Shown: piece by piece, positions 11,218 to 56,130 of the stretch
Numbering within the stretch: position 1 is the first letter of the stretch
How the letters are laid out: the number at the start of each line of letters is the position of its first letter
NCBI GenBank assembly: GCA_019828565.1
Contig: JAHDYR010000067.1
Coordinates: 170,723 to 234,722 of the forward strand
Source: Carpediemonas membranifera BICM
Lineage: Eukaryota; Protista; Fornicata
Reading direction: 5' to 3'
Length of the DNA: 64,000 nucleotides
Position numbers and translations under genes: made by a program
Notes under the pieces: model-generated
The model's input: only the letters and a program-made list of their open reading frames with translations
Told to the model about the DNA's origin: nothing
Database searches by the model: none

Positions 11218-11227
11218 TTTTAGACCT

Positions 11228-20067: not shown

Positions 20068-21217
20068 TTGAGCGGCTTTCCATTCGGGATTGGGATGTTT
20101 CATTTTGCACCAATCTTGGTGCAAATGGTGACGGAACATTTGGGGGAATTGGCGCGGTTGCTGCAGCTAGTAGCTTCTGAGGAATCTGATGATCCTCGAA
20201 TGCGTTCTCTGCAGCGCCGTTGTGCAACATTGGGCTCCGACATCCAAAATCTGCGATCGTCACGCGTAGCGCCGGGCAACAGGAGGCGCAAGAGGCTTGT
20301 GCGCCGTCCCGTGTGTCACTTAGAGCCCGCTTCGTCGGTAGACGAGAGCTCGAACGATGACAGCGAAGAAGACGAATCGCCGACTTCTTCGGGCGATGCC
20401 CCGGGGAATGACAGCTCCCCAACGCTGCCAGACGGCCAGCCCGAAGCCAACCAGCCTGCTGACGTGACTACTACGGTTCGCCAGCTCTCCCACGCCTCAG
20501 GAACGGACGTTTCGGACTTGAACCGGCTGGTCCATCGGCTGTTGGGCGAGCACGCCCATTCGATTGCTCTAACACTCACCCCGCTTATGAATTCTCTCCG
20601 TGAACAGCGGTTCGAGCGTGAGTTCTCCCTCGAAGACGTCGAACGCCAACTTAAGGGTGTTTCTTGTGCGCGTCGCGTGTTGCTCGATCTTCAGGCCTTC
20701 ATGAAACTTGCCCAGGCACTACCTGAACTGGACCTGCATCGCGCCGCCACTTGGCACCATGAGATGGACGCTATCCGACGCAAGCTCCCTGGTAGGGGTG
20801 ACAAGTCCCTCTGCCACCTCCTGGCCTTAGCCGTCTTCCCGGGAGTCTATGGTTTTGCTTCAAGAGGCTTGCTACCGGTCCTCTGATATACCGGAGATGG
20901 AGAAGCGATTCCGCTTGGTCATGCGGGTATTCAAAGCCCATCCACAGTGGGTACCGGTACTCATGACTACGGGCGACGGAGGGCTCCAGTTCACTGATGA
21001 GCTCCGTACTTATCGACTGGAACGAGTTGTTGGCAGTCGCAATGGCCCGGGTGGTCGACTCCTCACGTTGAAATGGGAAGACTACAGGTTTGTGACACGG
21101 TCGTACCCGACGCCGGAGTTGCTAGAATTGCCTGAAGTGGTAGCGCACCTTGCTCGTCACGGGGTTGAACCGCGCAGTACTGGACCTGCCTTCGCTGGTC
21201 GGGGCCGCCGACTCTAA
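20068..21217 (+). CDS. Antisense accessory ORF of B1 (1-nt shift near 20855)
   Basis: Same as the intact 382-aa ORF at 54939-56087. Confidence 0.7.
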
Positions 21218-21260
21218 CAACTAATCAACAATAAATCAGGCGAGATGAGAATAGGAGGGT

Positions 21261-24200
21261 TTACAACCCTTCCGACTTGGCCTGAGCAGACGACAAGAAG
21301 TCATCCAGAGCAGCAGCGTCTCTAAGGGAGCGGTATGGCTCCCAGGTAGCCTCGGAGTCTTCAAATCCTTGCCAATGGACAAGGTACTCTCTCTTTGAGA
21401 CCGAGCCCGTGCCACGCGACTTGGATATCCGGTCGATATACCACTCCTCCACGCCGGCGGCCGCCACCTGCTTGATCTGTTCCTCTGATAGGGTGCCGGG
21501 GACGAACTTTCTGACGCGAGACGCATCGACCCGGATGGGTTCCGCTCCGGGCTGACCTAAGTCTTTCACCATGTAGGCTACTACAACACCGCTCTGCTTG
21601 ACAGACGACACTCGTCGCATAGGCCCTCTCCAGCCCGGGGAAAGCTTGTTTGGAGGGCGCGAGGGATATTTCACGAGCACAAACCGTGACAAGATCTCCG
21701 TGCGGGTGGTGGAGGCCTTCGCCAACGCGTCTTCGCGCATGGCCAGGACACGTGCCTTGGCCAATTGTGTAGCGGCTTCGGCAGCGAGGAGATGCGACGT
21801 ACGAGCTGCTGCCGTGCTGTTCTCGGTAACGTATAACTTCTCCGGCACCGCCATGTTGCTCCCCGAACAGTATCTCGGCGGGGGGAAAGGCGTGTTGGTT
21901 GTCTTGGCATGGAATTGACAATAAACTGCGCAACCGGTAAATGCTGACGCCAATTGCCGTTTCTGAGCTCAAACTTCCTTGCCTTGAGCACTCTCTCGAC
22001 CATCTGGTTAGCTCTCTCAACCATTCCGTTGGACTGAGGGTGATGCGCGGTGGTAACGTGTGTCTCGAACCCCATGTCCTGTGCCAGCTTCTTCATGAGA
22101 GCGTTATTGAACTCGGGACCTCCGTCAGACTGCAGCACTCGTGGGCAACCGTAACGCAGCACCCATGTGTTGACGAAGGCATCCACGGCATCGCGTGCGG
22201 TGGTAGACTTGACGGGGGCTAGCTCCGTCCACCTGGAACACATGTCTATCATGACTTGGACGTATTTGTAGCCGTCACGCTCCGGGAGCGGACCTAGAGT
22301 ATCGATTGCCACCCGCTGGAACGGTGCATCCACAGCCGTGTGTAGACCGTCTGTTTTTTCAACAGGCGGTCTCTCCAAGACCTGGCAGACAGGGCACTTG
22401 GCGACGTAGTCGTAAACGTCACGGCGAGTAACTGAAACACCGGCTTCCCGCAAACGTTCCATGGTTAACCGTCCGGAGAGGTGGGCGTTACCGAACAGGT
22501 GGGCTTTGCTGATCTCATCAACTGACGCTAGCGAGAATACGCGCGACAGACCGTCGGCTCCCCCGTTGTCTAAACCGGCCACGTGCTTCAATTCGAAATC
22601 TAGGTCTGCAATAGAATCGGCCCATCTACGCACCTTAGCGTTACTCGACCTATACATGTACAAGAGGTTGCGATGGTCGGTCAGGAGCTCGAATCTCTCC
22701 CAGGACAAGAACTTCCTCCACTTCTGAAGGGCTGACACAATCGCAAAGGCTTCCTTCTCGCCGACACTCCATCTGGATTGGACGTCTGTGAAGGCTTTGG
22801 ACATATAACACACGGGGCGACCCTCCTGCAGGAGGACAGCCCCATACCCCACGTCGGATGCGTCAGTCATCACGACATGAGGTTTGGTCGCGTCGAACAT
22901 CGCCAAAGAATCTGCCGAGCACAAGGCTTCTTTGATATCCGCTAGGGCAGCCTCTAGCTCTTTCTCTGGCACGGCCGTACGGTTAGTCGTTGCAGACACG
23001 AGTGGTTTGGCGCGGGTCGCGTAGTTCGGTACGAAGTCGCGGAAGTAGTTAAAGAATCCGACTAGACCTTGCATCCCCTTGACTGTAGGCGACAGCTTCA
23101 TGTCTTGGATATCGTTGACTCTCTCTGGTGAGATCCTGACTGACCCCTCGGAGATGATCCAGCCGAGGAACTCCACCTCGGCCCGACCGAACTGACACTT
23201 GTCCCTTCCGAGCTGGAGCTTGTACTCACGGGCGCGCTGGAGGACCTTCCTCAGGTTCTCGATGTATTCCTCTGGCGTGGCACCCATGACGATCACGTCG
23301 TCGATGTAAATGATGCAGGCGGTCCCAAGTAGCCCTCTGAACGCGTTTTCCATCGCTCTCTGAAAGAAAGCACCGGCATTGCGAAGCCCAAAGGGCATCC
23401 GTGTATATTGGAACTGGCCGAAGGTAGTCCTGAACGCGGTATACTTCCGGCAACGCTCAGTAAGGGCGATCTGGTGGTAGCCGGCAGACAGATCGAGCGT
23501 TGCGAACACTCGCTTACCCGAAAGTTGTGTGATAACTTCGTCAATTCGAGGGATGGGGTAATCAAATGGCTCTGTCATGGTGTTGACTTCACGAAAGTCG
23601 ACGACAAAGCGAGTCTTGCCACCCTTCTTGGGTACGATGATAGTTGGGCTGGAATAGGCCGATTGACACGCCTGTATATACCTCTTGGCCAGAAGGGTAT
23701 CGATGTGTTCCTTGACAACCGGGACCTTTGGGGGCGGAACATAGTAGGGACGTACGTGGACGACTCGATCGCCCTTGAGGCATAGGTCGTAGGGCTCGAG
23801 CTTGCTCGGTTCAGTACGGTCACGGAAGAGGTCTTCGTACTCCTTGAGCAGCTTGATCTGCTGGCTCGCGATACCATCGGGGAGGGTAAGAGCCTTAGCT
23901 TCAAACTTGCTCGGGACGGGAGGATCGTCAGTTGCTTCGCTCTCCGAGTTGCTAGGCTGGGCCATTGAGGGCAGCAGTCCGATCTCTACCATCTGGCTGT
24001 AACCAAAACTGACTTCGTACGCAGTTTTGAGAACGAAAGCGCGGATCTTCAGCTCGCAGCCACGTGGCGTGAAGAGAGATGGCCTCAACGTGATCTGCAC
24101 CGATACGGTGCCTTCAGCTTCTCGTATTCCACCTGCCGTTTGGATGCGTACAGTATCGTGGTTGATCCTGGTAACGGCTGGCGAGGAGCACAGATCGGGA

Positions 24201-24448
24201 GATATCGTGGCACAGTCAGCACCAGAGTCTAGTAAGACCTTCACTTCGGCCTTCTCGATGACTCCATTGACTACAGGCAACGACCCTCCACCTGACGCAG
24301 CGGAAAATAAACACTTCGCCCCGTTTACTGGGGACTTAAAACGACAGAACTTCTCGAGGTGACCCTGCTTCTTGCAAACCGGGCATGTGGCACGATCCCG
24401 CGGGCACTTGAAGGATGGATGGCCCGTCTCGCCGCAGTTGTAGCACAC
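21261..24448 (-). CDS. B1 NC-PR-RT-RH-IN-chromodomain polyprotein
   Basis: Two CCHC knuckles, LDSGA, YIDD, TDASD, integrase DDE, YLVHWQGF..TWEP; indels near 21860-21885. Confidence 0.95.
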
Positions 24449-25305
24449 CAGCTCGCGCTTGCCCTCTCCTCGTTGGTTCGGGGGCTCTTGCGGCTGGCTT
24501 ATCCTGATGATGAGGCTTGGCGATTGGCTTGGGGGCGGGATGGGTGGGTTCGTGGTGAAGACCGCGATGGGGTTTGCCCGACTTAGCCTTGGTTGACGAC
24601 TGCTTGTCGGTCATTCCGATGGAACGCAGCATGGCACGGGATTCCTCGATATCGCGAGCGATATCAATCACCCGCGGCATAGCCAGTTCGAGGGAGAAAG
24701 CCTTCGGTGAGATCCTTAACCTTGTACTGAACGCGCGAATTATCGGGTAGCTTAAAGCAACGCGCGTAGGTGTCGCAGAGGATCTCAGAGTCTACCCCGG
24801 GATCAACAAGGGAGAGGAGGGTTCTGAACCGTCGGTTCACTCGAACCACCTCCTGCGGAGTAAAGGACGAGATGGAGAGACGGAACAAGTCGAGACGGGC
24901 AGAAAAACGGGACGGTTGCAGTGCTCTACCGAGCCGCTTGAGGACGCGGTCGTCTTTAGCGAGACGCTTGGCCTTGCGCTTACGCTTGTGCGTCTTTCGG
25001 ACAGCTGCGGTTAGGATGAGGGACTGCTGGAGGGGTTGCTCGTCGTCTTTAGGCGTTCCGGCTACTGGTGAACCTTCATCGTTCACGGGGACAGAGGCCT
25101 CAGCCGAGGGGATGGCTTCAGAGGCCTTGGCGAAGAGGTTAAAGCCGAGAGCGTCAGCGTACCGTTGGACTTCGGTGTCAATCATGTCGGCAACGTCGGC
25201 ATCACCGCCTTTGGCTCGGTACTCGGACAAATCCTCGGCGAATCGGACTAACGACTCAATGGTCGTCTTCTTTAGCATAGGCATATTGTTATAGAGCGTC
25301 ATCAA
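24336..25305 (-). CDS. B1 gag
   Basis: First ORF after the 5' LTR; matches 59206-60174 apart from one indel near 24697. Confidence 0.85.
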
Positions 25306-25448
25306 AACGTGGAATACTAGTATTGTGGTTCGTTTGACGAACTATGTTTACAAGAGGAGAAGACTCGACACAATGGTGTCGAGGAGAAACTCCTTGACTA
25401 ACTAATATCATATATAAATCTGTGTAATCTTGGGTGAGACCCATGACA

Positions 25449-35044: not shown

Positions 35045-35124
35045 TGTGGCGTTTCCTGTCTCGTTGCTCCAGTGAGTTTTGTCAGTTTAAACCACTTCAC
35101 CAGTTCTTGCCTTGATTCGGCACA

Positions 35125-35744
35125 ATGTCGACATTATCGGAAATTGAGGTACCTGTTGTTGACGATGTTGCATCCACTCATGTTAAGGAGGATCTCGTCA
35201 CTGTCATCGAGAGTTCTGCGCCCACCAAGTCCGTCGATTACTTGATGGGGCAGATAGATGCCCTTCGTCAGCAACTTTCATCCTCCGTTGTGTCCACTAC
35301 GCCTGCCGTGCCGCTCAGCTCTCTAAAGCGCCCCCGTTTCGGGCAGGAGCTTTCGAGCCTGAGCCAGGATCATTGGCGGGCATTCTTGGCGGCTTACGAA
35401 CGCCATGTGCTCCAGTACCCAACTGCTGAGAGCATCCTCTCCAACCTTGGCAAGTGGTGTCACCACTTCGCCCTGGACACCCGCTTCGCGCCCTTGGTGC
35501 AACTGCATGCCGCCTGGAGCCTGCGAGCGGCTGTTCCACCTACGACGATCGCCAGCCTGGCAGCCGAGTTGGCAGTCTGCCAGGAGGACCTTGCCACGGT
35601 CAAGAAGACTGTGGCAGCGGCCTTCGCCGTGGAGGACCCTACACTTCTCCTCCGTCAGCTCGGCCAGAAGGGCACCGCCCTCTGGACTGATAGACGCTGC
35701 CCCCACGAGCTAGCAACGCAGGTCGCTTGGGTGGCCGCCGAACA
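35125..35744 (+). CDS. Element D gag N-terminus
   Basis: ATG directly after the LTR; rejoins in frame at 43739. Confidence 0.88.
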
Positions 35745-36286
35745 TAGCATCTGCCGAAGAACTCGTCCGACTGCAGTGCGACAAGCGACTCCAGGACATG
35801 TATGCGTCCTTTGGCCTCAAGGAGTCATCGGACCCGTCGCAGGTCGAGCAGCTGGTGGACACGGGGGGCAACCCACTTGCCATTGTCACGATGGAGGGCA
35901 CGATGGGTCCCAACAAGTGGACCAACCTCGGCAAGAGCCTGACAGAGTGCTGTGGGATGATAATGCAAGGCTCTACGTTGATCCGCGTGACCAACCATGG
36001 TAATAGACTTGATCAGCACGCTCATGGGATGCCTGCTTCCGACAAGAGGAGTGTTGACTCGTTCGTGGAACGCACCCGTGTGTCCGTGCGCCGTGAACGT
36101 GCGGCAAAACGGCCTAACGTCACCCGCATCAGGCAGAAGTTGATGATTATCCGCCATTACAACCTTCGTTCTTTCACGCTGGTCAAAGAGATCAAGGAAA
36201 CGAGGACCGAGATGCGTAAGGAGAAGAAAGCCAACTTCTGGGACAGTGAATGGAATATTTCCGTTGAGGATGACGAAGAAGTGTAA
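35745..36286 (+). pseudogene. 5'-truncated hypothetical ORF at the left edge of the insertion
   Basis: The frame of ORF 35798-36286 stays open back to the junction (ASAEELVRLQCDKRLQDMY). Confidence 0.55.
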
Positions 36287-36310
36287 ATGAAATGAAAATA
36301 AAACAAGAAT

Positions 36311-37072
36311 TTATAGCTCCTGTGCCGAACACTCTAAGTAGTAATTCATGATGGCTTGGTATACCTTGCGACGCAGCACATCACGCGATTCTGCCTCAGC
36401 ACGTTCCGCATTCCGCTTGGCAATGACAGAAGTGAGCTGACTGAGTGTCTTAGCCTCCTTCTTCAGAACTCTGGTGGGTCTGGCGAAGATGAGATCCGCG
36501 TCGCGGTCACGGCAAGGCTTGCTCAGGACGAGCTTGACGTCATCGACCGTCACACCGCACGATGAAGCAGCGAAGGCATGGACCTTAGCCCGGTAGGCGA
36601 TGGGAATGCGGTGAAAGGCATCATCCATCTCGCGGACAGTCGCGATGAGTGGGTCGTCCGTGTCCAGCTCATCTGTCTGGGCGTCAAGACTGAGGAGAGC
36701 CTTGAAGCGGTGACGCTTGTCCTCATCACCGCCTCCCTGCCACTTGCGGCTGATCTCTTCGACCGACTGGAGATTGCCGTAGAGCTTGTCCTTCTTCAAG
36801 GAGGCTACTTTCATTTTAGGGACCTCGGCGGCAAACTTCTGGCTGAAGTCGACAACCCATCCGTTTGCGCGGGTAATATCGTCATTATTAAGGAGGAAAT
36901 TGCTGATAAAGGTCTGAACGATCTCAATGGGCGTCTTGTGAGCTTTTCGGGCTGTTTTCGTGGACTTGTTGGACTTGCTCTGGCTCTTTTGCTGCGCTTT
37001 CTTGCCAAGAGCCATTCTCCTCTCCTTTTGAGCTTCAGTGGCCTGTATATTGCCTTGTTTACTTCTTGCCAT
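36311..37072 (-). CDS. Basic helical hypothetical protein
   Basis: 253-aa ATG ORF with a Lys-rich N-terminus, convergent with 35798-36286. Confidence 0.7.
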   Translation of the reverse strand: MARSKQGNIQATEAQKERRMALGKKAQQKSQSKSNKSTKTARKAHKTPIEIVQTFISNFLLNNDDITRANGWVVDFSQKFAAEVPKMKVASLKKDKLYGNLQSVEEISRKWQGGGDEDKRHRFKALLSLDAQTDELDTDDPLIATVREMDDAFHRIPIAYRAKVHAFAASSCGVTVDDVKLVLSKPCRDRDADLIFARPTRVLKKEAKTLSQLTSVIAKRNAERAEAESRDVLRRKVYQAIMNYYLECSAQEL

Positions 37073-37147
37073 CGTTGTTTCCTTAAAATGCGTGTGAAAA
37101 TGTGAAATGAACTGTGACTCTCGACATTGCTGCGCAGCTATGGTATT

Positions 37148-37470
37148 CCAACGGCACAGAACGGGTTTATAGCATGCATATGATCCATTCTGGTGCCTTT
37201 ATCCTCTATAACCAACATCAGTCCATCAAAATGAATCTTGCAACAGAATACTCATCCACACGCATCGAGAACGAAAAAGAAGCATATAACCAACATCAAC
37301 AACCTAATAGAAGGCTGCATGCAAGCGTAGAGCTCTCCTAGTCAATTCTTCATTTTCACCACCATCGATCTCCACGTCAGGATGAAACCGTGCGCCCAAA
37401 AGCTCAGAGATGCCGTTATAGATGATATAACGACGTCTCTGAGCTTTTCAGCGATTTCAGTTTCTGGCCA
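37148..37470. repeat. 322-bp repeat, copy 2
   Basis: Matches 1337-1658; hairpin at 37398-37448. Confidence 0.95.
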
Positions 37471-37751
37471 TGGATAAGCTACAAATCCTGTCAATGTTGT
37501 CCTCAGAGGACACTGAAAAATTTAATCTGTGTCCTCTGAGGACCAAATTGACAAAATCGAAAATGGAGCGATGAGATGCCCATCGAAAAACGGCCAAAAC
37601 AGCGCAGGTGCAGAATGAGCTGAAAATCGGCCAAGGGGTAGCTCTTGGGTCTTTATGGCTGATCGGAGGTATTTACATGACAGCTGGCAATATTTATTGA
37701 GATAAAACGTATTTCATTTTTCGAGAAAGTCTTCTGAGGACCAAATTGACA

Positions 37752-39928
37752 ATGGTTAACGAAGACATCATCTCTCTCGGCAAACTGAAGGAGACAATGC
37801 TTGCTCCTGACGATTCTGGTATGTCACTTTCATTTTCACGGTCCTATTTACACAGATGATTCATTCCGTGCATACGACGCCCTTTCGTCCACAAAGAGCC
37901 GTATAACCTGGCTGCAAGATCACGGCATCGTCTCTGATGACCCTCTGTTCTTCGTTTGCGTCCGTCTGATCAGCATTCGTACGATCAACGTTGTTTTCGG
38001 GTTCCCGTTGAAGCGCACTTTAAGCCAGCACGTTCACGACTATGGAGTTGCCAAACTACGCGCGATATGTGACGCAACTAACCGCAACTACCTCTGCGAG
38101 GTCGACTTTGACTCTCCCGACACAATTGAGGCATTCCGACAGAAGTTTTGTGACCACTTCACCGCCAAATCTGTTCATAAGGCTCTAGTCGGCGTCGACT
38201 CGCTCCCCTGTTGAGAAGCAGGTTGAGATTTACCGCGCATTCCACCTTGTGTTGCGCCACAAGGACTCGAAGAAACTCGATTCTCGTGTTCCGGCAGGCC
38301 AATTTGGCCAGTTTATCGCCCACGCCCAGCTCAGCAAGAAGCTGTCCTTCGCTGGCTCAGAGAAGCTGGCCGAGGAGTTGGCTAAGATCGGTTCGCTCGA
38401 TCCGTCAGCTCCTCTGAAGAGGAAGATCGCTCGTCTTGAGAAGGAGCTCGCCTCATCGACTGCTGCTCTGATGAAGGTCCAAGAGGAGTTAGTCCGGGCC
38501 CAGGACCACTCAGCAGCAGCCACCAAGCCTTCTGCCGTCGTTGCTGCCCCTCAGCCGCTTCCGGTTGTCGACGCAGAGTCCACGACACACGATGAATTTT
38601 CCGACACTGACGAGTCCGAGTCTGATGACCACTCTGAACCGGCCGCCATGCAGGGTGACGGCGTTCCTTTGCCCCAGACTGATCAAGACATCGACGTAGA
38701 GTCTGATGTGGACGACACAGACACCGTTGGTTCTCTCCTTCAGCAGCTAGACGACACCATTGCAGGCCTTGATGATGTCCCTGAGTCTGTGCGCTTGTTG
38801 GAGCAGTACGAGCCCTTGATAAAACGGCTTGCTGAGGAGAGGGAGGCGAGGGAGGCGCTTGAACAGGCTAACAGAGAGTCTGAGGAGTCCCAGAAGAGAC
38901 TTGAAGCTGAGTTAGGTCAGCAGAAGGCCGAGGATCAGGCGATCCATCAGTTTACTCAAGCAGAGTTGGCACGGGCGAGTGAGGCTGGGCTTGAAGCGCT
39001 CGCCGATGAACTCGAGGACAACTGGGCTGAGCTTGTCAGGCGCGCCGAGGAGGCAACAGTGGAGCTTGACCGCTACGTTCCTCTCGCTGCCTTGATGGTA
39101 CTGTTCCAGAGGAACAATGTGACTGGAGCCTTATGGACTCGGATCAATAGCACCATGATGAGGTACGGGGGCCAGAAGTTCATAACGGTCCCACCTCTCG
39201 ACCTCGGTCTGTCGCCAGAGATGAAGGCTATCATCAAACAGCACTCTCCGACGCCTGCCAATGTTCCCCCTATGCAGATATACTTACGGAGCGACGTTGA
39301 TAGGCAGAAGTACATCGACGTGGAGTACGACAAGGTAGGCGAGCGAGTTCTCAAAGATCGTAAGAGTTGGCGGAAGATTGCAGTCAACCCGGATGGATTG
39401 TGCATCGGCTACTGCCTGCAGAAGGTTGAGAATGGCGAGTTCGACAAGAAGTTTGCGGCAGAGGAAGTGGCAGCAGTGAGGGAGGAGGTGCGCGCCTGGG
39501 GATTCTCCGATGCTGGCGAGAGGCTGAGGCTTGAGACGTCTAACGTGTTCGTGCCCACCCTGATGTTCGACGATGCCACTGATTGGTACAGCAACTTTGG
39601 TGTCATGGCCTGGTCAGCTCTGAAGAGCAAGACTGTAGTCGTTATCTGGGTCAAGATGTTGACGTACCATGACAAGTATATTGTGCGGATGCATTTGACG
39701 GAAGTTTATGAGTCCGGCATGGTCCGGCGTGGATCTGATGAAGATGTGGCTGCGGCGCAAGCTATTGTGGTCGTCAAGGATGAGCATGCGACGCTATTTG
39801 TCCGCAAACGTTCAAAGGGTGGTAAGAGAAAGGCTCATACGACTTATATCAAGCGCAAGGCAGTCGATAAGGATCGCGAAAAGAGAGTTGTTGATGCCGA
39901 GGACGTTAAGCGTGGAGTTCCCGAGTAA
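37752..39928 (+). CDS. Coiled-coil plus OTU-like cysteine protease (deubiquitinase-like)
   Basis: ATG at 37752, 37-nt intron 37819-37855, 1-nt shift in CCCC near 38207; VNPDGLCI, WYSNFGVMAWS and EHATL match OTU motifs. Confidence 0.72.
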
Positions 39929-39954
39929 AAAAAGAGATGTTTTGACATTTTAAT

Positions 39955-40764
39955 TCATTTCTTCCGCTTCTTGAGTGCCGGATACTGCTCCAGGAACCTT
40001 GTGAGATAGTTCGGATGAGAAATGGGCAGACTCGGGAACCTAGCAATGGTTAAGACCTCACCCGCACCAAAGAAGATCTCGCCGTAACTGATACGAAGAA
40101 ACTCTTCGGCCTGAATGACGTTCGTCGACTCAACCGCAAGGACTGGAAGGTCCTTGAGCAAACGGTTGGTGAACTGGCAGTTGGTGTCACTCTCACTGTG
40201 GTTGATGAGGTGTACACCAATGCCTTCACCTTCGCCGGCGTCGACGTGAATGTTGCTAGCGTCGAATGAAATGCTGTGTAAAGGCATAATGAACAATGAA
40301 CAAACACCATGTTGCTGTTATTCGCGTGGTAGTCCTCGTCGGACACAATCCTACCGGCGTAAATGCCGAGGAGCTTTCCGGGCTCAATTGCGGCAGTTGC
40401 AATGAGGCCTCTACCCACGTCCGTGTGGTCGGGAGCCAGACAAGGCTGCACCTCAACGGCAATGGAGGGGTGGGTCAGCCGGGTGGATAACCAACTCGGG
40501 GGTTCGAGGGGAGGAAGGTCCTTCTCGGCCTCTTTAAGCTCCCCTGATCGACTCCTCGGGAGTGTTTGGGTAGATCGCGGCGACCAGATCCGGATGCAGT
40601 GCCTGAGTATGCACAACGGATTCAATGATGGAATCTTCGCTTGAGGAATCCTCCTGAGAATCATTTGAAGGCGCAGACGGCGGCGTCTTGCCCGCAGTGG
40701 ACGTAATGGGTATTCTGATACCCCCAGGCTGCGGCTTTGGTGGGAGCGCCTTTCTTCTCGCCAT
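39955..40764 (-). CDS. SET-domain lysine methyltransferase
   Basis: GRGLIAT..I..G..YAG, VDA, INHS..TNC, EFLRISYG; 32-nt intron 40305-40274; 1-nt shift near 40541. Confidence 0.88.
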
Positions 40765-40878
40765 CTGATTTTTTTTTTGCAAACGGACACGCGGTATTTC
40801 TCGGGATTGATGGGGCCGTCTCACACCGTAAAGGACACACATACAATATCTTATCTGTAACACCAGAATGCTTGCTTA

Positions 40879-41976
40879 TTGTGGTCCATATCCTTCCCTA
40901 TAGCTGGTTCGGCCAACTACCAGTGTTGGAAAAAAAGTGGTAGTTGCCAAATGGAGAGGAAATTTGGCAAATTCGGTACCAGACGCATCAGCGACCATCC
41001 TCTCACGTATGAATGCGTCTGTGGAATCACTAGGCCGCGTTCTGACCTTCGCAACCAGGGCCTGAAGGAATATGACGGAATCAGGTACACGCATGACTGC
41101 CCGTTCACCCTGAGCAAGCTTGTGAACCGCCGCATCGTTATCCTGCTCGAGCCAGTCCATGGCTTCGAAGCACCTACTTGTGCGAACCCGGTCTTCACTG
41201 TCACCGGGCTTGCTGGCTCCGAGGGGTACCACAAGCGCATGAAGGCCATCCTCGATCTCGTCAGCGACGAGTGGCTCACCACGGTTGCCGTCAGTTTCGT
41301 CTCGACGACCCACCTCGGCTCCATACTGCAACAGTTGGCTGCAGAATTCGCCAATTTCGAGACATTCTGGGTTGTTTCTGGCCACAGCGAGACCACAACG
41401 TCGAGAATGATCGTTAATGCGAGCGCTAACGAGTTCCTGTACCTTCACGATATCGTACAGATGATCCTCTTCGCTTTCCGTGAGCCATCCCTCGTCACCA
41501 CCAGCCGGGTTCGGCTCATCTACTTCGCCACCTGTACCGGAGCGGACAATAGCGAGTTCTCTCTGCTTAAGCAGTCCATTTCGACCCAGGCATACGAGCA
41601 TACGTGCATCATTCTCACTCCGGAGAAAATGCTTGCCAACGAACTCGTCCTGCAGGACTGCTTTTGGCTCTACCGCACTACATGCATGGACAACCCGCTC
41701 CACTTCGTCTCGCGTTACTTCTCCGGCTATGGGCTCGCACCTGGCACAGCAGGGAGACGGGTTATCGCGAATGGATCAATGTCCATAACCCCGGGCGCGA
41801 TTGAGATCCTCACAGCCACTCAGTTCCGCACGCCAATCCCTCTTCCCGAGATGGTCGACCTTGTTTCTGAGGTACTTGCATATAGACCACTGCAGAGATC
41901 TCCGGCGGATGTTATGGCCTCGCGCTACATTACTGAGATGACAGTTGCGCACAGAGCGGCACTGGAAGACACTTAA
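40879..41976 (+). CDS. Hypothetical protein, possible caspase/CHAT-fold (clan CD) peptidase
   Basis: FWVVSGHS and LIYFATC resemble the His and Cys strands of the catalytic dyad. Confidence 0.5.
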   Translation: MWSISFPIAGSANYQCWKKSGSCQMERKFGKFGTRRISDHPLTYECVCGITRPRSDLRNQGLKEYDGIRYTHDCPFTLSKLVNRRIVILLEPVHGFEAPTCANPVFTVTGLAGSEGYHKRMKAILDLVSDEWLTTVAVSFVSTTHLGSILQQLAAEFANFETFWVVSGHSETTTSRMIVNASANEFLYLHDIVQMILFAFREPSLVTTSRVRLIYFATCTGADNSEFSLLKQSISTQAYEHTCIILTPEKMLANELVLQDCFWLYRTTCMDNPLHFVSRYFSGYGLAPGTAGRRVIANGSMSITPGAIEILTATQFRTPIPLPEMVDLVSEVLAYRPLQRSPADVMASRYITEMTVAHRAALEDT

Positions 41977-41999
41977 AGTTCAAAATCTCCCTATTTAAC

Positions 42000-43221
42000 T
42001 TACTCAATTGGCTTCATATCCGCCACCTTCTGGTAGACAGTCATACACTGGTCGCAGAACCTGACACGATAGTCCTGGCCGTCGAGATGGAACTCAGCAT
42101 AGCTGAAGTGTTTCTCTTCGCAGAACCAGTTTAGGCACGCCCGGCAGACGCCAGTGTCCTTTGTCGACTTGTCTCCGTCCTTGATACACGCGTGACATCT
42201 GTTAGACCTTCCTGCCAGACTGCAAGCTGCGCAAACCTTTCTGTTCTTACCATCAATCCTCTTCTCTCTGACACACTGAAGATGCATGAACTGATGGCAG
42301 AGATAGCACGTTTCATACTCGTTTCTTTTCATGTTTGGGTTGAAGTACCATTCAGGTGAGGCACAAACAGCGCATGCGAACAGTAACTTACGCTGATATA
42401 GCTTCAGAAACGTCGCTTGCTTGAGGGCGGGGACCTTATCGTTCATTTCAACGGCCTTGGGTGACTGCTTGAGGAGATCAGTGACAGTTGTGGAGAGTGA
42501 AGCCGTCACCATCGCGGCAACCTCCTTCAAGTCAGCCTCTTCGAGCCTCGATCGCTTCTGAGCAGGCTCATGCATCTGCGCATCAAAAATTAAGCTTCTT
42601 GACGGGGGAATCAGGCTTGATGGTAGCCAAGTCAGCTCTTTTTCTGAGCTTTGGTACCAATGTTGTCACTGGAGTCTTTGTGGGTGTCTCTGCGGGTGTT
42701 TCTGCTGGGATACGTGCCTCAGGCTGGAGCTTGCGATGCTTGATCCTGATTACAACGGCTGGAGGCCATTGAATGCCGGTGCAAGTGATCAGACTGGAGA
42801 CATCGTGGAGTCCAAGTCCCCGAAACAGCACAGACATCCTGTTTCTAAACTCCTGCAAGTGTTCAGCTGCATTTGCTCTGTCTCTGACAACCAGGTAGGG
42901 TATCTTTGTGCCAATGAGCTCTGTGCCACCCTTTCTACTTGCCACAAATGCCTGAATGGGCTCAGTAGTCGTGCGCCTGACGGAGTTTGCAATAGAAATC
43001 TTGCGAAAGCCGTTGCAGAGGCCCGATATCACATCCTGCATGCCAAGGAGAGCGCGATGAACGTCAGAGGTCGTCAGACCGATAGTTGGGATGTCCGCGA
43101 CGTCGAAAAAGCATTCCAGGAAGCTAGTCACGAACAGCCGGCGGTACTCTGTTCTCTTATCCGATCCGCAAGACGTGCCCTGCGAAATCTCAGCTTTCTT
43201 CGCAGTTTCACTGGTCGTCAT
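42000..43221 (-). CDS. PHD finger protein, homolog of 4301-5530 (1-nt shift in a T run near 42586)
   Basis: FLECFFDVADI vs MLTCFFVIVDDI; FACAVCASPEW vs FCCGHCTSPDW; same tandem Zn fingers. Confidence 0.85.
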
Positions 43222-43243
43222 ATTCTCATCTTAAACTGCGCAG

Positions 43244-43471
43244 GTGTTGACGACAATGTTACGGTTATCCACGAACGAAAGGCTTAATCATATGACCAGT
43301 TGCATCCATGAAGTCGGCAAGATACAAGATTCTGTTCGAGAAATACGAAATCACATCACTGGGCTGAATTGCGAGGGGTTGGTGAATGAGAGGCTGAATG
43401 ACACACAACACGTTCTGGAAGAGATAGGAGATATGTTTATAGATGTAATACAGCAACTTAAAGACCACTAG
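43244..43471 (+). CDS. Small coiled-coil hypothetical protein
   Basis: 75-aa ORF divergent from the PHD gene. Confidence 0.35.
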   Translation: MLTTMLRLSTNERLNHMTSCIHEVGKIQDSVREIRNHITGLNCEGLVNERLNDTQHVLEEIGDMFIDVIQQLKDH

Positions 43472-43738
43472 CACGTTATTATCACTTTGAATAAGCAATG
43501 AATGGTTATGCAACATCAGCACCTACCTACGAATCACAAGAATGCCCCTAGCACGTCGTATGCAAGCAAAAATGAGACTTACCCGTACCTTCCGCACGTT
43601 TCTCTACGTTTCACAAACGTTGGTGAAACGTGTGAAATAGTGAAAAAGATACGGGTGAATCTCATTTTTTCTTGCAGTTTCTTGTGCAAAAGGGTGTTTA
43701 TCCTCCGTATATCCCCGGATTAACTGGCCATTCTAACA

Positions 43739-46700
43739 GTATGACGACACTCTCCACCGCTGGCTCGACCCTTCCGACCGGCTGCCGAAGCGTGCAGTCC
43801 TGCGGTCCTTCGAGTCATCCTGCAAGAGCGCGGCCCCACACACGGTACGTGCGGTTCTGGAGACCCTAACGGCCCTCCAGAAGTATACGACTGTGACCGC
43901 GCTCGCCACTGACCTCGTAAGCGAGCTCCGCGCCCTGGAGGTCGCATCAACACGGGCCGCCACTTACGCCCACACTCCCACACAGCCCAAGGTCCAACCT
44001 CCGGCTGCCACTGTGGCACCACCTGCCACGTCAACCTCGGTCGCCCCGTCTGCCGCTACAGCACCCAAGACGCCCGCGACCACCCGCACGCCCACTCAAC
44101 CGAGACCTCAGGGCGCTGCCAAAGCTACCCACGGCCCTAGAGCCCCAGCATCGAAGGGCTCGAAGGACGATTCAGCGGTCTCAGCCGCGTTCGCCGCAAG
44201 ATGGTGTGACCCTAAGAAGCCGCCATTCGAGGGGATGACGTGGTGTGATCTTCACGGTCGCTGGGGAAGCCACGAGCGTAGCAAGTGCTCGCTGGCCCAG
44301 CCTAAGATCACTGTCACCCCGACTGCGACGACTCAGCCAGCCGCCGCCACCAAGACACACCCCATGAGCCTCCGCCAGAACCCGCCACAGAACAAGTTCC
44401 CCAACATGGTCGTCCATGCGGTGGAGGCGCCTGTGAACCAGGTGGCAACCCCCGACTCTAAGCCCATCCGGGTCCACATCACCCTCAACGGGGTCCGGAC
44501 CACAGCCGAGCTAGACACTGGCGCAGCGGTCAGTTGTGTCAGCGAGGGTACGCGCGATGTTATCGCAGCTGTTTCGAAGCAGCCGACTTCCCCGGTTGGT
44601 ACCATCGACCTGAAGGTCGCCAACCAGGTGACCGTCGCAGCAGACCAGGTCCCTCTACAGCTCACCATGCCAGGTGCCAACACGACGCTCTCCCTAACTT
44701 GGAACTTCTCCGTTCTGGAAGGCCAAGGGCACTCCGTACTGCTGGGCCGGGACGTCCTCCGAGAGGTAGGACTGCTGACTGACTCGGCACTGATCATTCC
44801 GACGGAGGCTCCACCGGACGATGAAGATGATATCGAGGCGATCGGCTACCTTGGGTCCGACTCTGCCGAGCCCGCTCGAGAAGCCGAGGTCCGCATTGCG
44901 GCGGAGCTTGAGAAGGTCACTATCCCTGACGGTCCGCTTCACGACCGGCTTGTCGACCTGGTATACGAGTTCCGCGAGTTGTTCGACCCCGTCCTGCCGC
45001 CTGAGGGGTCTACCCTCACACCGTTCACACTTGAACTCGAGGAGCCTTTCACTGCCAAGGCTAAGCCGCGACCCATCAAGGGTCACCTCGACGTAATTCA
45101 GCAGGAGATCCAGCGACTGCTGGACGAGGGCATCATACGACCGAGCGTCAGCCCGGTCGCGTCCCCACACGTTCTAGCGGACAAGAAGGGCGGCCAGAAG
45201 CGCTTCTGCGTGGCCTACAACGCCCTTAACGCGGTCACGGTCAAGGACGCGTACCCGCTCCCGGACACCCGTGATTTCATCAACAGCGCATCAGGTTGCT
45301 CGTTCTTTGGCAGCCTGGACCTGCGTTCGGGGTATAATCAGATGGTCCTCGACCCTTCTGTCTGCTCCTTGACGGCGTTCGTCGTACCAGGGGGTCAGTT
45401 CGAGTACGTGCGCCTTCCTTTTGGCCTCACGAACGCCCCTGGACGTTTCCAACGTGCAATGGATGACGCCCTTCGCGGCGTGGAGGGCACGAGCGTCTAC
45501 GTCGACGACATATTGAACTATGCCAACGACGCCGAAGTGTACCTCGCCAGAACACGACAACTACTGACACGCCTGCGCCAGCACCGTCTTCGGCTGAAGG
45601 CCGAAAAGTGCACCCTTGGTGCACCCGAGACGGAAGCCCTCGGTTTCGTGCTCAACCGCGATGGCCATCGTGTTTCCGAGAGCCGTAAGCAGGCCCTGCT
45701 CGATATGCCACGGCCCACGACCATCAAGGAGCTTCGCCGAGTTCTCGGCAAGTTTAACTTCCTGGCCCGCTTCATCGACGGGCTGAGCGAGGCCGCCGAG
45801 CCGCTCCACCAACTACTCCGCCCCGAGGCAGACATCACCATGCAGTGGGGGGAGGTTCACGATGCGGCCTACGCTGAACTGAAGCGCCGCGCGACTGCCG
45901 ACACCATTCTGGCTCTGCCGGACGTCTCTAAGACCTGGATCCTGGAGACGGATGCCTCCGACGTTGCCTGCGGCGGTGTGTTATGGCAGGTCTCCGATGA
46001 CGAGTCGCGACTCCCCATCTCCTTTTTCGGGCACAAGTTCACAGAAACCCAGCGCAGATGGGCCACTGTGGACCAGGAGCTATACGGGATCATACATTGT
46101 GTTACCCGGGCAGATTTAGCTCCTCTGTTGAAGCTCAAACCTTTCCTCATCCGCACGGATCACAAGAACCTCGTCACTATGGTCATCAAGAGCGAGGAAG
46201 GCAATCGGAAGCTCACTCGTTGGCGAACGATACTAGCGGAGTACCCCTACTCCATCGAGCATGTCAAGGGCGCAGACAATGTCGTTGCCGACAGTTTGTC
46301 GCGGCCACCCGTGGTTGCGGCCGTCAACCTGTCCACGGAGGTGCGAGCAGCTCAGGCCGCCGACCCCTCGGTTTCGCGCCTGCCCACTGACGCCGACGGT
46401 CTCCACGTTCACGATGGGGTCGCCGTTATCCCCGAGGGAGCTACCGACTTGAAGGCGAAGCTCATCGCCGAGGCCCACCGCTACCACGCCGGCGCCGTCA
46501 ACACAGCCGCTAACCTACGCGCGATGGGTTTCACCTGGCCAGCCGTCATCGACGACTGTCGTTCTTACGTGAGCAAGTGTGCCCTGTGCCAGAAGGCGCG
46601 ACTCGCCCGTTTCAGAGAGTCGGCTCTCGCGTCCACCATGGTACACACACCGTTTGACACCGTCTCGGTCGACACAGTCGGCCCCCTTCACACAGACGCA

Positions 46701-47708
46701 TGGGGCAACAGGTTTATCCTGGTCATCATTGACGCATTCACGCGTTATGTGGAGCTTGTACCCATGCCCAACCACACCGCGGACTCCGTCGCAGGGGCAA
46801 TTTGGACCGCCATCATGGGCAGACATGGCCTACCAACCACAATTCGGACTGACAATGGCCCGGAGTTTGTGAACAGGGTCCTCAATGCCCTCCTCAGACG
46901 CCTCAACGTTACACACCACCGCACTCTGCCGTACCACCCGGCGTCGAACGGGATCGTAGAGCGCGTGAATTACGAGATCAAACGGCATCTCCGCCTCCTT
47001 TGCGCGAAGTTTAACACACACAGCAACTGGTCCCCGCTGGTGCCGTACGTGCAACATGTCATCAATCACTCTCGTCACTCCGCAACGGGGTTCACCCCGC
47101 ACCAACTCCTCTTCGGCTACCCCTCCGGCCTCACGTTTGTACACGAGCCGGCTGACAGGGCCGAGACCGAGCCACTGGCTTCTCTGGACGACTACATGTC
47201 CGACCTTCAGTCGTACCTTGACGGGCTGCGCGCGAAGGCGGTGGCGAAGCAGGAGCGCATCATCAGGTCAAGATCCGCTGTCACAGCGCAGTTCAAAGCG
47301 GGCGACTTCGTCCTCCTAGCCAACGAGAGAGAGACCAAGCTCCACGGTGCCATTGGCCCCTTTAAGGTGGTCAGCATAGGGGAAAACAAGGCTGTCACCA
47401 TTCAGCATCTTGTCGATTTGTCGGAGCGCACTGTCCACCAGGACAAGCTCTTTCTCTTTGACGCCGACGCCACGCTTGAGCAGATGCGAATGTTTGCCGT
47501 CGGTGATCGGGAGGAGTTCCTCCCATCCCGCATCCTGTCTTGCGACAGAGACGCTCACACATTTCTGATCGAATGGGATGGCTTCCCGGCCTCGGAGGCC
47601 ACCGAGGAGCCGATGGCCAGTCTGGCCAACCACCCCAAGGGCAAGCTAATCCTCAAGGATCTTGAGGAGGGGCAGGATGTGGCGTTTCCTGTCTCGTTGC
47701 TCCAGTGA
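43739..47708 (+). CDS. Element D gag-pol remainder: NC, PR, RT, RH, IN and chromodomain
   Basis: LDTGA, YVDD, TDASD, TDNG, NGIVER, FLIEWDGF; stop codon lies inside the 3' LTR. Confidence 0.96.
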
Positions 47709-47852
47709 GTTTTGTCAGTTTAAACCACTTCACCAGTTCTTGCCTTGATTCGGCACACCGCTTGAATCTACGCCACCGCTGGTGGGTCAGACCGTCTAGC
47801 GGGGCTGGGGCATCATGTTAGTGGTAATCGGGAACATTACTAGTAGATCTAC

Positions 47853-52560: not shown

Positions 52561-54938
52561 CGTCCAGCTCGGGGTGCTCCAGGTCTACTGCAGGCGGCTC
52601 TACAGGTTGATCTCCACTGGCCGGGCGGGTACTGGCACGACCGACACAGTGGCGGCCATGCCTCTACGTCTGAAACCCCACCCCTCTTCGTCGACCTCGG
52701 TGTAGTGATTGTTTATTTGAGTTTTGTCCTCTTCTGAGGTTTACTCTAAATTCCACTTCTCCTTTGCTTCAGTGTTTCACCACAGTTATAACTGGATCCA
52801 ATGAATACCGAAGCTCTTTCCCAATTCCTGGCACCATACCTTAAGAAGACGTCCCAAAAAGCCTGGACGACATTCCGCGAGGAATACTTGGCTTATACAG
52901 CACGCGCAACAACTCCAATCCCCATCCACCAGCTCATCGCTCCCTCCGTCCTCGCAATCTTCTGCCTTCGTGATCCCCAGCTCGAAAGAGTGATCCACAA
53001 CTCCATCACTCAGAGAATCTTCGAGGCTGAAGAGGCCAACAACGAGGAACCGGGCAACCTGCTCGCTCACGACGACGCAAGCGATGACAGCGAAGGATCC
53101 GACACCGAAGAATCCTCCGATTCCGAGGAGGAAATCGTCGTTGATCCCATTCCCCACGGGGATATCGACTACAACGAGGTGATAATGAACGAGATCGATG
53201 AGATCTTCGCTCCACTCGATACCCAAGACGCTCTGGACCGCATCGCAGCTGTCTATTTCCAGCCGACTGATGACCTGTAGCAGCCTGTAATCGGCCGTAG
53301 ATTCACAGTTCACTGCGATCAGAGAAACTTGCAGTGGATGGAGACTTCGGAGAACCCAAAAGTCGTCAGGTGGCGCCAAGCCTTGGACGGATTCGACTTC
53401 AAGGTCATACACGTTCCTGGTTCAGAGAACGGCGCAGCAGATGCTCTTTCGAGAGTCGTTGCCATATCCTGCGCAGACGCCGACGCAGAAAATCACCATG
53501 ATGCAATTCAACGCGCACACTGCGCAACTCGTGGCCATCAAGGCGTTACGGCTACAATTAACCGCCTAATACAAGACAATTGCTCCTGGAAAGGCATGGC
53601 AAGCGACGTTAAGGCATTTATCAGCCAATGTCCCGTTTGTCAGCTCGCGAAGGGAAACATGAAGCCACCAGTACAGTTCAGGCATCCTACACACGGCGAG
53701 TATCCATTCCAAGTGGTACAAATCGACGCTATCGGACCTATGACGGAGATCGACGAGTTTTCCCATGCACTCGTCGTAATCGACACCTTTTCGAAGCTCC
53801 TTCAGGCATAACCGATCAAGAACACCTCATCCAGCGAGGCCATCAGAGTTCTTGACACCTTCTTTGGACACTACGGCTTCCCGAGCAGGATCTCATGTGA
53901 TGGCGCCAGCCAGTTCACGTCCAAGGAGTTCCGCGACCACGCAGACCAATGCAACATCGCCCTAGAGATCGGCACACCGTACCATCCCGCCGGCCGAGGG
54001 ATAGTTGAGCGCGCTAACCGCGAGGTTAAGAAGCATCTCCACGCGCTCGCTCTCGAGGCCGAATAACATTGGGTCAACAACATGCCCATCGCTGTAGACA
54101 TCATCAACAACACCCCATTCACTCGCTCAGGCGTATCACCGTTCCGTATGCTCTTCCACCGAGACGCACCAGTCGGCGAGCCCGACGACTCTATGGCGGA
54201 GCTGCTTAAGAAGTTCGCCGAGCAGACCACGCTGGCGAGACAGAAGCACGCAGCGCACCTTCCCCAAGCTGAACCAGTGTGGTTCGTTTGACGAACTATG
54301 TTTACAAGAGGAGAAGACTCGACACAATGGTGTCGAGGAGAAACTCCTTGACTAACTAATATCATATATAAATCTGTGTAATCTTGGGTGAGACCCATGA
54401 CACTGCCCCTCCATGCCTCAATGAGGCATGACCCCAGACAGCGTGAGCTTTGACGGCTGGCTACTGCCAGTGGGGGTGAATGTTGGCTCTTGGGGGCCGG
54501 TCCTGGTGGGTGCCAACCACCGATCGAGCCCCTTTTTTGCGACCTTGGCGGGGACACAACAAGAAGCACAACGACGTGCAAAATAGCACAGCTTACAATC
54601 GCGCGGTACCGCTGGGTTAGAAGGATCCTACCATAGGGGTTCTGCCCCTCCTCGGCTTTTCCTCGCCGAAAATCGAAATGTGACGTACCTTAAAATGCTT
54701 GGGTGCAGGTTATGGCCATCCAAGCACAACGATGGTGAAACACCGCCCCTTTCCAACTGTTTGCGCCATTAATCAGGTTGGTGCTGAAAATGGCATTTTC
54801 AGGCCTCAACGAGGCCTCTACGGCGAGATACGAGCCTTTTTCTTTGCAGCGTGAATTCACACCACGACTACGCTCAGATAGAGCTACTAAACGACTAAAC
54901 AACATCAAGACAACAATAAAGAGATCATAACTCCATGT

Positions 54939-56087
54939 TTGAGCGGCTTTCCATTCGGGATTGGGATGTTTCATTTTGCACCAATCTTGGTGCAAATGGT
55001 GACGGAACATTTGGGGGAATTGGCGCGGTTGCTGCAGCTAGTAGCTTCTGAGGAATCTGATGATCCTCGAATGCGTTCTCTGCAGCGCCGTTGTGCAACA
55101 TTGGGCTCCGACATCCAAAATCTGCGATCGTCACGCGTAGCGCCGGGCAACAGGAGGCGCAAGAGGCTTGTGCGCCGTCCCGTGTGTCACTCAGAGCCCG
55201 CTTCGTCGGTAGACGAGAGCTCGAACGATGACAGCGAAGAAGACGAATCGCCGACTTCTTCGGACGATGCCCCGGGGAATGACAGCTCCCCAACGCTGCC
55301 AGACGGCCAGCCCGAAGCCAACCAGCCTGCTGACGTGACTACTACGGTTCGCCAGCTCTCCCACGCCTCAGGAACGGACGTTTCGGACTTGAACCGGCTG
55401 GTCCATCGGCTGTTGGGCGAGCACGCCCATTCGATTGCTCTAACACTCACCCCGCTTATGAATTCTCTCCGTGAACAGCGGTTCGAGCGTGAGTTCTCCC
55501 TCGAAGACGTCGAACGCCAACTTAAGGGTGTTTCTTGTGCGCGTCGCGTGTTGCTCGATCTTCAGGCCTTCATGAAACTTGCCCAGGCACTACCTGAACT
55601 GGACCTGCATCGCGCCGCCACTTGGCACCATGAGATGGACGCTATCCGACGCAAGCTCCCTGGTAGGGGTGACAAGTCCCTCTGCCACCTCCTGGCCTTA
55701 GCCGTCTTCCCGGGAGTCTATGGTTTGCTTCAAGAGGCTTGCTACCGGTCCTCTGATATACCGGAGATGGAGAAGCGATTCCGCTTGGTCATGCGGGTAT
55801 TCAAAGCCCATCCACAGTGGGTACCGGTACTCATGACTACGGGCGACGGAGGGCTCCAGTTCACTGATGAGCTCCGTACTTATCGACTGGAACGAGTTGT
55901 TGGCAGTCGCAATGGCCCGGGTGGTCGACTCCTCACGTTGAAATGGGAAGACTACAGGTTTGTGACACGGTCGTACCCGACGCCGGAGTTGCTAGAATTG
56001 CCTGAAGTGGTAGCGCACCTTGCTCGTCACGGGGTTGAACCGCGCAGTACTGGACCTGCCTTCGCTGGTCGGGGCCGCCGACTCTAA
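54939..56087 (+). CDS. Antisense accessory ORF of B2 with a C-terminal chromo-like segment
   Basis: 382 aa; coiled coil, basic NLS-like stretch, acidic tract, YRLERVVGSR..LTLKWEDY. Confidence 0.75.
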   Translation: MSGFPFGIGMFHFAPILVQMVTEHLGELARLLQLVASEESDDPRMRSLQRRCATLGSDIQNLRSSRVAPGNRRRKRLVRRPVCHSEPASSVDESSNDDSEEDESPTSSDDAPGNDSSPTLPDGQPEANQPADVTTTVRQLSHASGTDVSDLNRLVHRLLGEHAHSIALTLTPLMNSLREQRFEREFSLEDVERQLKGVSCARRVLLDLQAFMKLAQALPELDLHRAATWHHEMDAIRRKLPGRGDKSLCHLLALAVFPGVYGLLQEACYRSSDIPEMEKRFRLVMRVFKAHPQWVPVLMTTGDGGLQFTDELRTYRLERVVGSRNGPGGRLLTLKWEDYRFVTRSYPTPELLELPEVVAHLARHGVEPRSTGPAFAGRGRRL

Positions 56088-56130
56088 CAACTAATCAACA
56101 ATAAATCAGGCGAGATGAGAATAGGAGGGT

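Follow-up and report, generated by a model that had tools for sequence, protein, structure and literature searches.

The stretch of DNA analysed here, referred to as the window, comprises 64,000 nucleotides of contig JAHDYR010000067.1 (positions 170,723 to 234,722 of the forward strand, assembly GCA_019828565.1) from the protist Carpediemonas membranifera BICM, a member of a genus known for the absence of canonical DNA-replication and kinetochore components. Between positions 35045 and 47757 the window contains a long terminal repeat (LTR) retrotransposon, element D, whose gag-pol gene is interrupted by a block of 8,000 bp that carries genes of its own, including one for a SET-domain protein and one for a protein with a PHD finger. 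Very probably the block is a dead copy, lacking its left part, of a cut-and-paste DNA transposon of C. membranifera that measures 12.1 kb when complete and was active recently. We consider below the junctions of the block, its full-length relatives, the way in which it may have lost its left end and the genes that it carries.

Element D has LTRs of the form TG..CA, is flanked by a 4-bp target-site duplication (TSD) of CCGC and encodes protease, reverse transcriptase (RT), RNase H and integrase in this order, features that identify it as a Ty3/gypsy LTR retrotransposon. Its LTRs are very short (80 bp) and the gag ATG begins at the first base past the 5' LTR, so that the element is essentially leaderless (35045–35127). 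An initial annotation of the window had described about 8 kb of foreign DNA within the gag-pol gene of a young element, and this description holds: the two LTRs are identical over 80 bp, and empty copies of D are collinear with the interrupted one. Three such natural empty copies (L039–L041) read ...GCCGAACACGACACT... at the site, which is translated as VAAE-HDTL, and together with the window copy they form a natural filled-site/empty-site pair. When the two flanks of D were set end to end and compared with the empty copies, the excisable unit proved to be 35744–43743 (8,000 bp) or, equivalently, 35745–43744. With it removed, D is collinear with the empty copies without a gap, being 100% identical over 1,035 bp and showing 2 mismatches over 1,957 bp, and by simple arithmetic the two pieces of its open reading frame (ORF), of 619 and 3,965 nt, are in frame. 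The empty copies thereby replace the earlier delimitation of the unit as 35745–43734 plus one copy of AACA, which had given the frame VAAE-QYDDTL, and they contradict the proposed termini TAGCAT/TAGAAT with an ACA duplication. They also place the nine bases at the right junction (AACAGTATG) in the insert, where they form the tip of its terminal inverted repeat (TIR), and not in D. A reading of these bases as a 9–11-nt microhomology between D and the inserted element is thus ruled out. D lost no base on insertion and shows a duplication of 0–1 bp (A), compared to the 2-bp TSD of the transposon family described below, and there is 1–2 nt of CA microhomology at the junction.

Both partners of these junctions are high-copy, near-identical repeats, no junction-crossing reads or contigs were recovered from the small contig sets searched, and the homopolymer indels in the block resemble long-read consensus errors, all of which would suit an assembly artefact in which the junctions between D and the block are chimeric joins of repeats. 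The junctions are, however, reciprocal and base-precise at a single D coordinate, and excision of exactly 8,000 bp restores D without a gap, which is a strong argument against a chimera. In addition, the right junction lies exactly at the TIR tip, a geometry that the collapse of repeats would not give. We therefore regard an artefact of this kind as hardly credible.

The genome (24.2 Mb in 69 contigs) was searched with positions 35745–43734. At least 12 copies are 99–100% identical over the full 7,990 bp, and there are many partial ones; altogether, at least 23 copies of the block reach this identity. At the right edge the similarity runs nine bases further (AACAGTATG) in every copy before the flanks diverge. 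At the left edge, 15 of the 17 copies read there continue into a common sequence. Followed leftward in 1.5-kb steps, this shared left arm proved to extend over 4,134 bp, and its outer terminus and the right end of the element are exact reverse complements of each other. The copy on contig C3 measures 12,133 bp and has perfect 48-bp TIRs with the tips CATACTG...CAGTATG, while imperfect palindromes of about 110 bp lie inside each end (element positions 326–434, ~109 bp, and 11951–12066, ~116 bp). The flanking dinucleotides are equal in all three copies for which both flanks are known (TC, TC and CA), and a sister element, X, which is inserted in the C61 copy, is flanked by a duplication of AT. 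Equal 2-bp flanks are thus found in four of four testable insertions and indicate a 2-bp TSD. The left arm (4.1 kb) holds the transposase gene, with a fixed gene set to its right. Helitron, Crypton/DIRS-type and retrotransposed origins were dropped on the basis of the 48-bp TIRs and 2-bp TSDs.

The window copy is without the left 4,134 bp of this element, including the transposase gene, and keeps the right two-thirds (Table 1). The window holds only one TIR of the family, at 43696–43743, and because the left TIR and the transposase are missing the copy is unable to move on its own. It carries 7 private substitutions in 8 kb. These results agree with much of the initial annotation, which had proposed movement as DNA, had seen in the block a truncated or non-autonomous remnant of a large cargo element, and had noted the missing transposase and an ORF cut by the left edge: the full copies are 12,133-bp TIR transposons, their transposase gene lies on the arm that is missing here, and the ORF at the left edge has 231 amino acids in intact copies. 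Copies across the genome have now supplied the true termini, the 2-bp TSD and the empty D sites. That the block might consist of single-copy, syntenic host genes is excluded. It is multicopy, has identical right ends with variable right flanks and carries genes that are kept across sister families. Two further statements had to be revised. Clear TIRs had been reported as missing, while 43696–43743 is a perfect 48-bp right TIR whose partner lies on the missing left arm; and an intron on the sense strand of D had been put forward as a sign of movement as DNA, an argument that fails because it rests on the wrong strand, the sole verified intron (40274–40305) being on the minus strand and so antisense to D.

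Table 1. Coordinates in the window of element D and of the transposon copy inserted in it.
Feature	Position	Strand	Remarks
D 5' LTR	35045..35124	+	80 bp, TG..CA; 100% identical to 47678–47757
D gag-pol, 5' part as far as the insertion point	35125..35743	+	100% identical to empty copies L039–L041
Left-truncated transposon copy, 8,000 bp	35744..43743	+	Element positions 4134–12133; ATAGCATC... to ...CAGTATG
3' remainder of an ORF (231 amino acids in intact copies), cut by the truncation	35745..36286	+	L003:1347–2042 crosses the breakpoint; no Pfam match
253-amino-acid ORF, conserved element gene	36311..37072	-	Sister families have homologues of 35–45% identity, equally placed and oriented; no Pfam match
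Coiled-coil protein with "OTU-like" C-terminal part	37801..39928	+	Single ORF of 708–712 amino acids in intact copies; here split by +1 in C-run at ~38205
SET exon 2 (SET-C half, NHS and Y motifs)	39955..40273	-	Pfam SET positions 47–105, E=0.0035, 18.2 bits
SET intron, 32 nt, GT..AG	40274..40305	-	Skipped in contigs
SET exon 1 (Lys/Arg/Pro-rich N-terminus and SET-N half)	40306..40764	-	Pfam SET positions 1–37, 13.9 bits
341-amino-acid ORF, best conserved accessory gene	40951..41976	+	57% identity in family 2, 48–51% in family 3, 22–26% in further families; frames open
PHD-finger protein gene	42000..43221	-	Single ORF of 406–409 amino acids in intact copies; here split by +1 in A-run at ~42585
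Subterminal imperfect palindrome, ~116 bp	43561..43676	.	Inverted self-match, element positions 11951–12066
Right TIR, 48 bp, minus-strand tip CATACTG	43696..43743	-	Perfect inverted match to the left end of full copies
D gag-pol remainder (protease, RT, RNase H, integrase) and 3' untranslated part	43744..47677	+	Pfam; collinear with empty copies
D 3' LTR	47678..47757	+	80 bp, identical to 5' LTR

The position at which the window copy is truncated is shared with other copies. We searched the genome with a 400-bp probe across this site and scored all 28 matches, among which 23 junctions are intact. The element sequence begins at probe position 199/200 in the window copy and at 203 in the copy at C1:1844990, and in the C61 copy it is interrupted at 200/201. 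The clustering of three independent breaks within 4 nt, in an element of 12 kb, marks the tandem AGCAT-AGCAT found there as an internal hot spot for this transposase family. In the C61 copy sister element X is inserted, with its canonical AT duplication, exactly between ...TTAGCAT and ATAGCATC..., and the same ATAGCATC that borders X in this copy forms the left end of the window copy. Element X is present in at least 8 copies of 96–97% identity. Of its tip, the terminal 10 bases alone (TAACAGTATG) are shared with the family of the window copy, which we call family 1, yet its TSD is likewise 2 bp long. The first 151 bases of X as read at L015:1–1499 (C61:36031–37529) are 97% identical to window positions 37528–37678, and modules have therefore been exchanged between families.

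The coincidence of the window copy's left edge with this site suggests an aberrant, transposase-mediated truncation, and an excision of nested ends or a kindred reaction is the route towards which we lean. The dinucleotide AC of D would first have received a full copy, whose hot spot would then have acquired a second element end, an arrangement of which the C61 copy is the example seen. The outer left TIR would have paired with the inner, right-type end and both would have been excised together, after which repair would have lost 2 nt, converting GCCGAACAC + ATAGC... to GCCGAACATAGC... and leaving the single duplicated A. In a close variant, which fits the junctions almost as well, the right part would have moved out of a nested donor. 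Alternative transposition, as described for maize Ac/Ds, pairs the ends of neighbouring elements and removes the intervening DNA, leaving a one-ended remnant and a footprint. The likeness of the window copy to such remnants is drawn from its junction anatomy, and the second end is not in the window.

Internal deletions are the commonest path by which DNA transposons become non-autonomous, and the CA microhomology at the junction would also fit a full copy in D that later lost its left 4.1 kb by random deletion or slippage, stopping at the boundary of D by chance. Such a deletion would have to start exactly at the boundary between the element and D and to end within a 4-nt window of a 12,133-bp element, at the very base where a sister element has independently inserted and no more than 3 nt from the third break. 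We therefore consider an ordinary deletion quite improbable. It is also conceivable that a linear piece of the element, freed by breakage or by transposase cuts at a nested tip and at the outer right tip, was ligated by non-homologous end joining (NHEJ) into an unrelated double-strand break in D, the transposase taking no part in the integration. Such a capture fits the junctions nearly as well as the excision route. It would account for an insertion that cost D nothing and added no more than 1 bp, rather than a 2-bp duplication, and for an insert whose left bound is exactly the flank of a TIR tip and whose right bound is exactly such a tip. It would, however, demand that D happened to break cleanly and that both ends were ligated with nothing lost or filled in; the right junction cannot be told from a canonical end joint of a transposon, and the missing duplication is explained equally well by a 2-nt excision footprint. 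We judge this capture unlikely.

Some observations do not favour our account of the window copy and its route by transposase-mediated truncation, in addition to the lack of junction-crossing contigs noted above. In a tree of 14 copies the C61 copy is the most distant from the window copy, with 28 substitutions compared to 9 over 6 kb. This rules out the C61 copy as the direct donor, and the nested intermediate is therefore hypothetical for the lineage of the window copy. Three +1 homopolymer differences in the window copy, in the C-run at ~38205, the C-run at 40541 and the A-run at ~42585, split the OTU-like, SET and PHD ORFs respectively, and may be either real mutations or long-read consensus errors. 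Each is also present in some other copies, so that the sites are polymorphic, and at 40541 all transcript contigs carry the shorter form with one base fewer. The assignments of carried genes as OTU, caspase-like and GNAT, finally, received no hidden Markov model (HMM) support in scans of the element ORFs.

The left arm of the complete element encodes an ORF of 618 amino acids. Its homologues (P0004–P0013) have 770–912 amino acids, and the transposase gene therefore extends past this ORF into the next frame, by a frame change or an intron. Relatives are few, with 19 found among 1.8 billion cluster representatives, mostly from C. membranifera, and a search for homologous proteins returned proteins of the same species only. 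Neither the 618-amino-acid ORF nor 13 relatives matched Pfam, and the PDB gave no match to the transposase by sequence or by profile. An AlphaFold2 (AF2) model built from a 14-sequence alignment reached a predicted local distance difference test score (pLDDT) of 74.8 and a predicted template modelling score (pTM) of 0.71. Foldseek with this model returned the RAG1 core (E=5.7e-11, probability 1.0), followed by amphioxus BbRAGL and HzTransib; VIA-align aligned 388 residues with RAG1 at Z=14.5 and scored Transib at 12.7 and the P element at 11.8; and a shape search of the ESM Atlas found clusters of RAG1, Plavaka and Transposase_21 (EnSpm) at a template modelling score (TM) of about 0.5. In the alignment D267 and D348 are invariant and the E of GCNEQ is conserved, and in the RNase-H-like core of the model D267 lies on beta-1, D348 after beta-4 and the GCNEQ glutamate on a later helix, making D267, D348 and E497 of the 618-amino-acid ORF the candidate DDE triad. 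From the model we infer that the left-arm protein is a DDE transposase with a predicted fold matching RAG1/Transib and other enzymes of the CMCT clade.

The CMCT clade comprises EnSpm/CACTA, Mirage, Chapaev, Transib/RAG1, Plavaka, ESTA and Lanisha, and its defining features are CA..TG termini, TSDs of 2–5 bp and C(2)C plus H(3–4)H motifs (Kojima 2025, PMC12730594). The Carpediemonas element resembles its members in its 5'-CA..TG-3' tips and in its 2-bp TSD, which is within this range, as well as in the predicted fold of its transposase, nearest to RAG1, Transib, Plavaka and EnSpm-type proteins. Among the CMCT lineages, Mirage is listed with a 2-bp TSD in the Repbase classification. The element differs in its 48-bp TIRs, its subterminal palindromes of ~110 bp and its four to five conserved accessory genes. 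The sequence of the enzyme itself speaks against a close placement in several ways. There is no conserved CxxC between D348 and E497, meaning that the C(2)C zinc motif of the clade is not conserved; the histidine motif is atypical, being H450-x2-H453, whose second histidine is exchanged in 5 of the 14 sequences, while C495 is conserved; and since its sequence cannot be matched to any known transposase family, the link to RAG1 and CMCT rests on the predicted fold, at a TM of about 0.4–0.5. Because the zinc motifs are not conserved, we place the element in a new lineage of its own, linked to CMCT by fold and end anatomy, and not in Transib, RAG-like or EnSpm.

The genes to the right of the transposase form a conserved set. 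Genome-wide protein searches found the SET protein, the PHD protein, the 341-amino-acid ORF and the 253-amino-acid ORF beside diverged transposase genes, with their order and strands unchanged. On contig C65, for example, the transposase at 250052 (plus strand) is followed by ORF253 at 252035 (minus), SET at 254892 (minus), ORF341 at 255995 (plus) and PHD at 257049 (minus). Identities to family 1 are 37% (ORF253), 50% (SET), 57% (ORF341) and 40% (PHD) in family 2, and 35%, 40%, 48–51% and 36% respectively in family 3, with open frames in both families. As order, strand and open frames are kept at 35–57% identity, these are maintained core genes of the element rather than recent captures or casual cargo. 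We infer that the accessory proteins act on chromatin at or for the element, and the manipulation of host chromatin silencing that the initial annotation suggested may be among their roles. Pfam searches up to E=10 gave nothing useful for the OTU-like part, for the 341-, 253- and 231-amino-acid ORFs or for the N-terminus of the PHD protein. Transcript-type contigs cover the 253-amino-acid ORF at positions 36362–37062.

Among the genes named in the initial annotation, the SET and PHD assignments are supported by profile matches and motifs, while the OTU-like and caspase-like ones are not. The two SET exons were searched separately, and each alone scores under the 22.4-bit cut-off. The protein contains INHS and SYG motifs, and its SET-N and SET-C halves are joined by the spliced mRNA: contigs from two studies, four runs in all, lack the intron, from which it follows that the SET gene is transcribed. 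Within exon 1 the +1 difference in the C-run at 40541 shifts the frame of the window copy relative to the transcripts. The genome contains about 70 SET loci in three identity classes. The start of the protein (40306–40764, minus strand) has a Lys/Arg/Pro-rich segment, MARRKALPPKPQ...TAGKTPPSAPS, that loosely resembles the tail of histone H3 and might serve as a pseudo-substrate or as a target of auto-methylation.

The PHD ORF shows a C4HC3 pattern in its sequence, matches Pfam PHD_4 weakly at E=0.006–0.013, under the cut-off of that profile, and forms the C-terminus of the 406–409-amino-acid protein in intact copies. Homologues in sister families are open frames of 414–425 amino acids with 36–40% identity. 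The N-terminal half of the protein matched neither kelch nor any other Pfam family.

The coiled-coil protein is in part shared, its coiled-coil middle being 80–96% identical in other families, while the OTU-like C-terminal half is confined to family 1. The latter has a DGLC...H pattern, seen by eye, and its identity as an OTU protease is unconfirmed: Pfam gave no OTU match even at E=10, the PDB gave no sequence match, and a feature score of 0.90 in the atlas to a giant-virus cluster, 19% of whose members carry OTU, is a weak lead only. The 341-amino-acid ORF likewise had no Pfam or PDB match. By eye it contains SGHSE and ATCTGAD motifs, and the atlas provided a weak lead to DUF6642/CHAT at 0.85–0.90. 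A caspase/CHAT-like fold is suspected; a single-sequence AF2 model, at a pLDDT of 33, was unusable.

The pairing of a RAG1-fold transposase with a PHD-finger protein invites comparison with RAG1-RAG2/ProtoRAG and Transib (PMC1131882; PMC4411706), as the RAG1 core is the best structural match of the transposase and the PHD-finger protein is encoded convergently to it, which recalls the PHD finger of RAG2. There are also differences. The Carpediemonas TSD is 2 bp and not 5 bp, and the host is a metamonad protist. Kelch repeats, present in RAG2, are absent from the PHD protein by Pfam, and no homology to RAG2 was found. The consensus of the RAG heptamer is CACAGTG, and the tip CATACTG matches it at only 5 of 7 positions. 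That the element represents a hitherto undescribed, deep-branching RAG1/Transib-type lineage in a metamonad, equipped with a chromatin module of SET writer, PHD reader and protease, is a doubtful proposition. If it were true, the module could mark and read nucleosomes at the element ends or at targets, much as RAG1 relies on the PHD finger of RAG2, and the AGCAT-AGCAT hot spot and the one-ended copy would be by-products of chromatin- or sequence-guided targeting.

Other transposons are known to carry genes for epigenetic modifiers. In work cited by PMC12730594, SET genes are attributed to HarbingerS and Phytophthora MuDR transposons; a proto-Helentron of Phytophthora carries SET and Helentrons carry OTU (PMC4067079); and TET/JBP genes are found in fungal KDZ, Plavaka and EnSpm elements (PMC12730594). 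The Carpediemonas element is similar in that an autonomous element keeps a SET gene of the histone-methyltransferase type and possibly a protease gene too. It differs in the lineage of its transposase, in a SET gene with an intron and a Lys/Arg-rich N-terminus, and in a set of SET, PHD, 341- and 253-amino-acid genes that is syntenic across families down to 35–57% identity. We found no published description of DNA transposons from Carpediemonas in the literature, and there appears to be no account of an element that unites a 2-bp TSD, a fixed multi-gene set with SET and PHD, and a transposase of predicted RAG1 fold that sequence searches fail to detect.

The apparently orphan "cargo island" thus proves to belong to a defined mobile element whose ends, target duplication, enzyme and fixed gene set can be named. 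A transposase of predicted RAG1 fold that is invisible to sequence searches would broaden the known range of RAG1/Transib/CACTA enzymes, and the inheritance of SET and PHD genes along with it may make the element a convenient system for studying a transposon equipped with histone-mark machinery of its own. The base-precise breakage hot spot could be used to study the origin of one-ended, immobile remnants.

Several further arrangements of these and related elements were seen. At C67:745094–792774, about 540 kb beyond the window, five left-arm copies lie head to tail on the minus strand at a spacing of ~11.1–11.3 kb. Their identity ranges from 86% to 100%, there are stops in several accessory ORFs, and the arrangement resembles a tandem repetition of units somewhat shorter than the full element. 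A family-1 copy on C38 (92021–95954 and 107299–111352) is interrupted at element-block position 4055 by an insertion of ~11 kb. A 6-kb LTR element with 125-bp LTRs is present in the window as two copies (19407–25448 and 54278–60317) that are 99.75% identical to each other, and its LTR also sits in the left arm of the C16 transposon copy (L007). Window positions 1337–3741 and 5129–5491 are part of another, related element, in which 1337–1658 and 3016–3739 are 94–97% identical to 37148–39248, the region of the coiled-coil ORF. This element has a PHD-like ORF on the plus strand, an open frame of 419 amino acids with 32% identity, in an arrangement unlike that of family 1.

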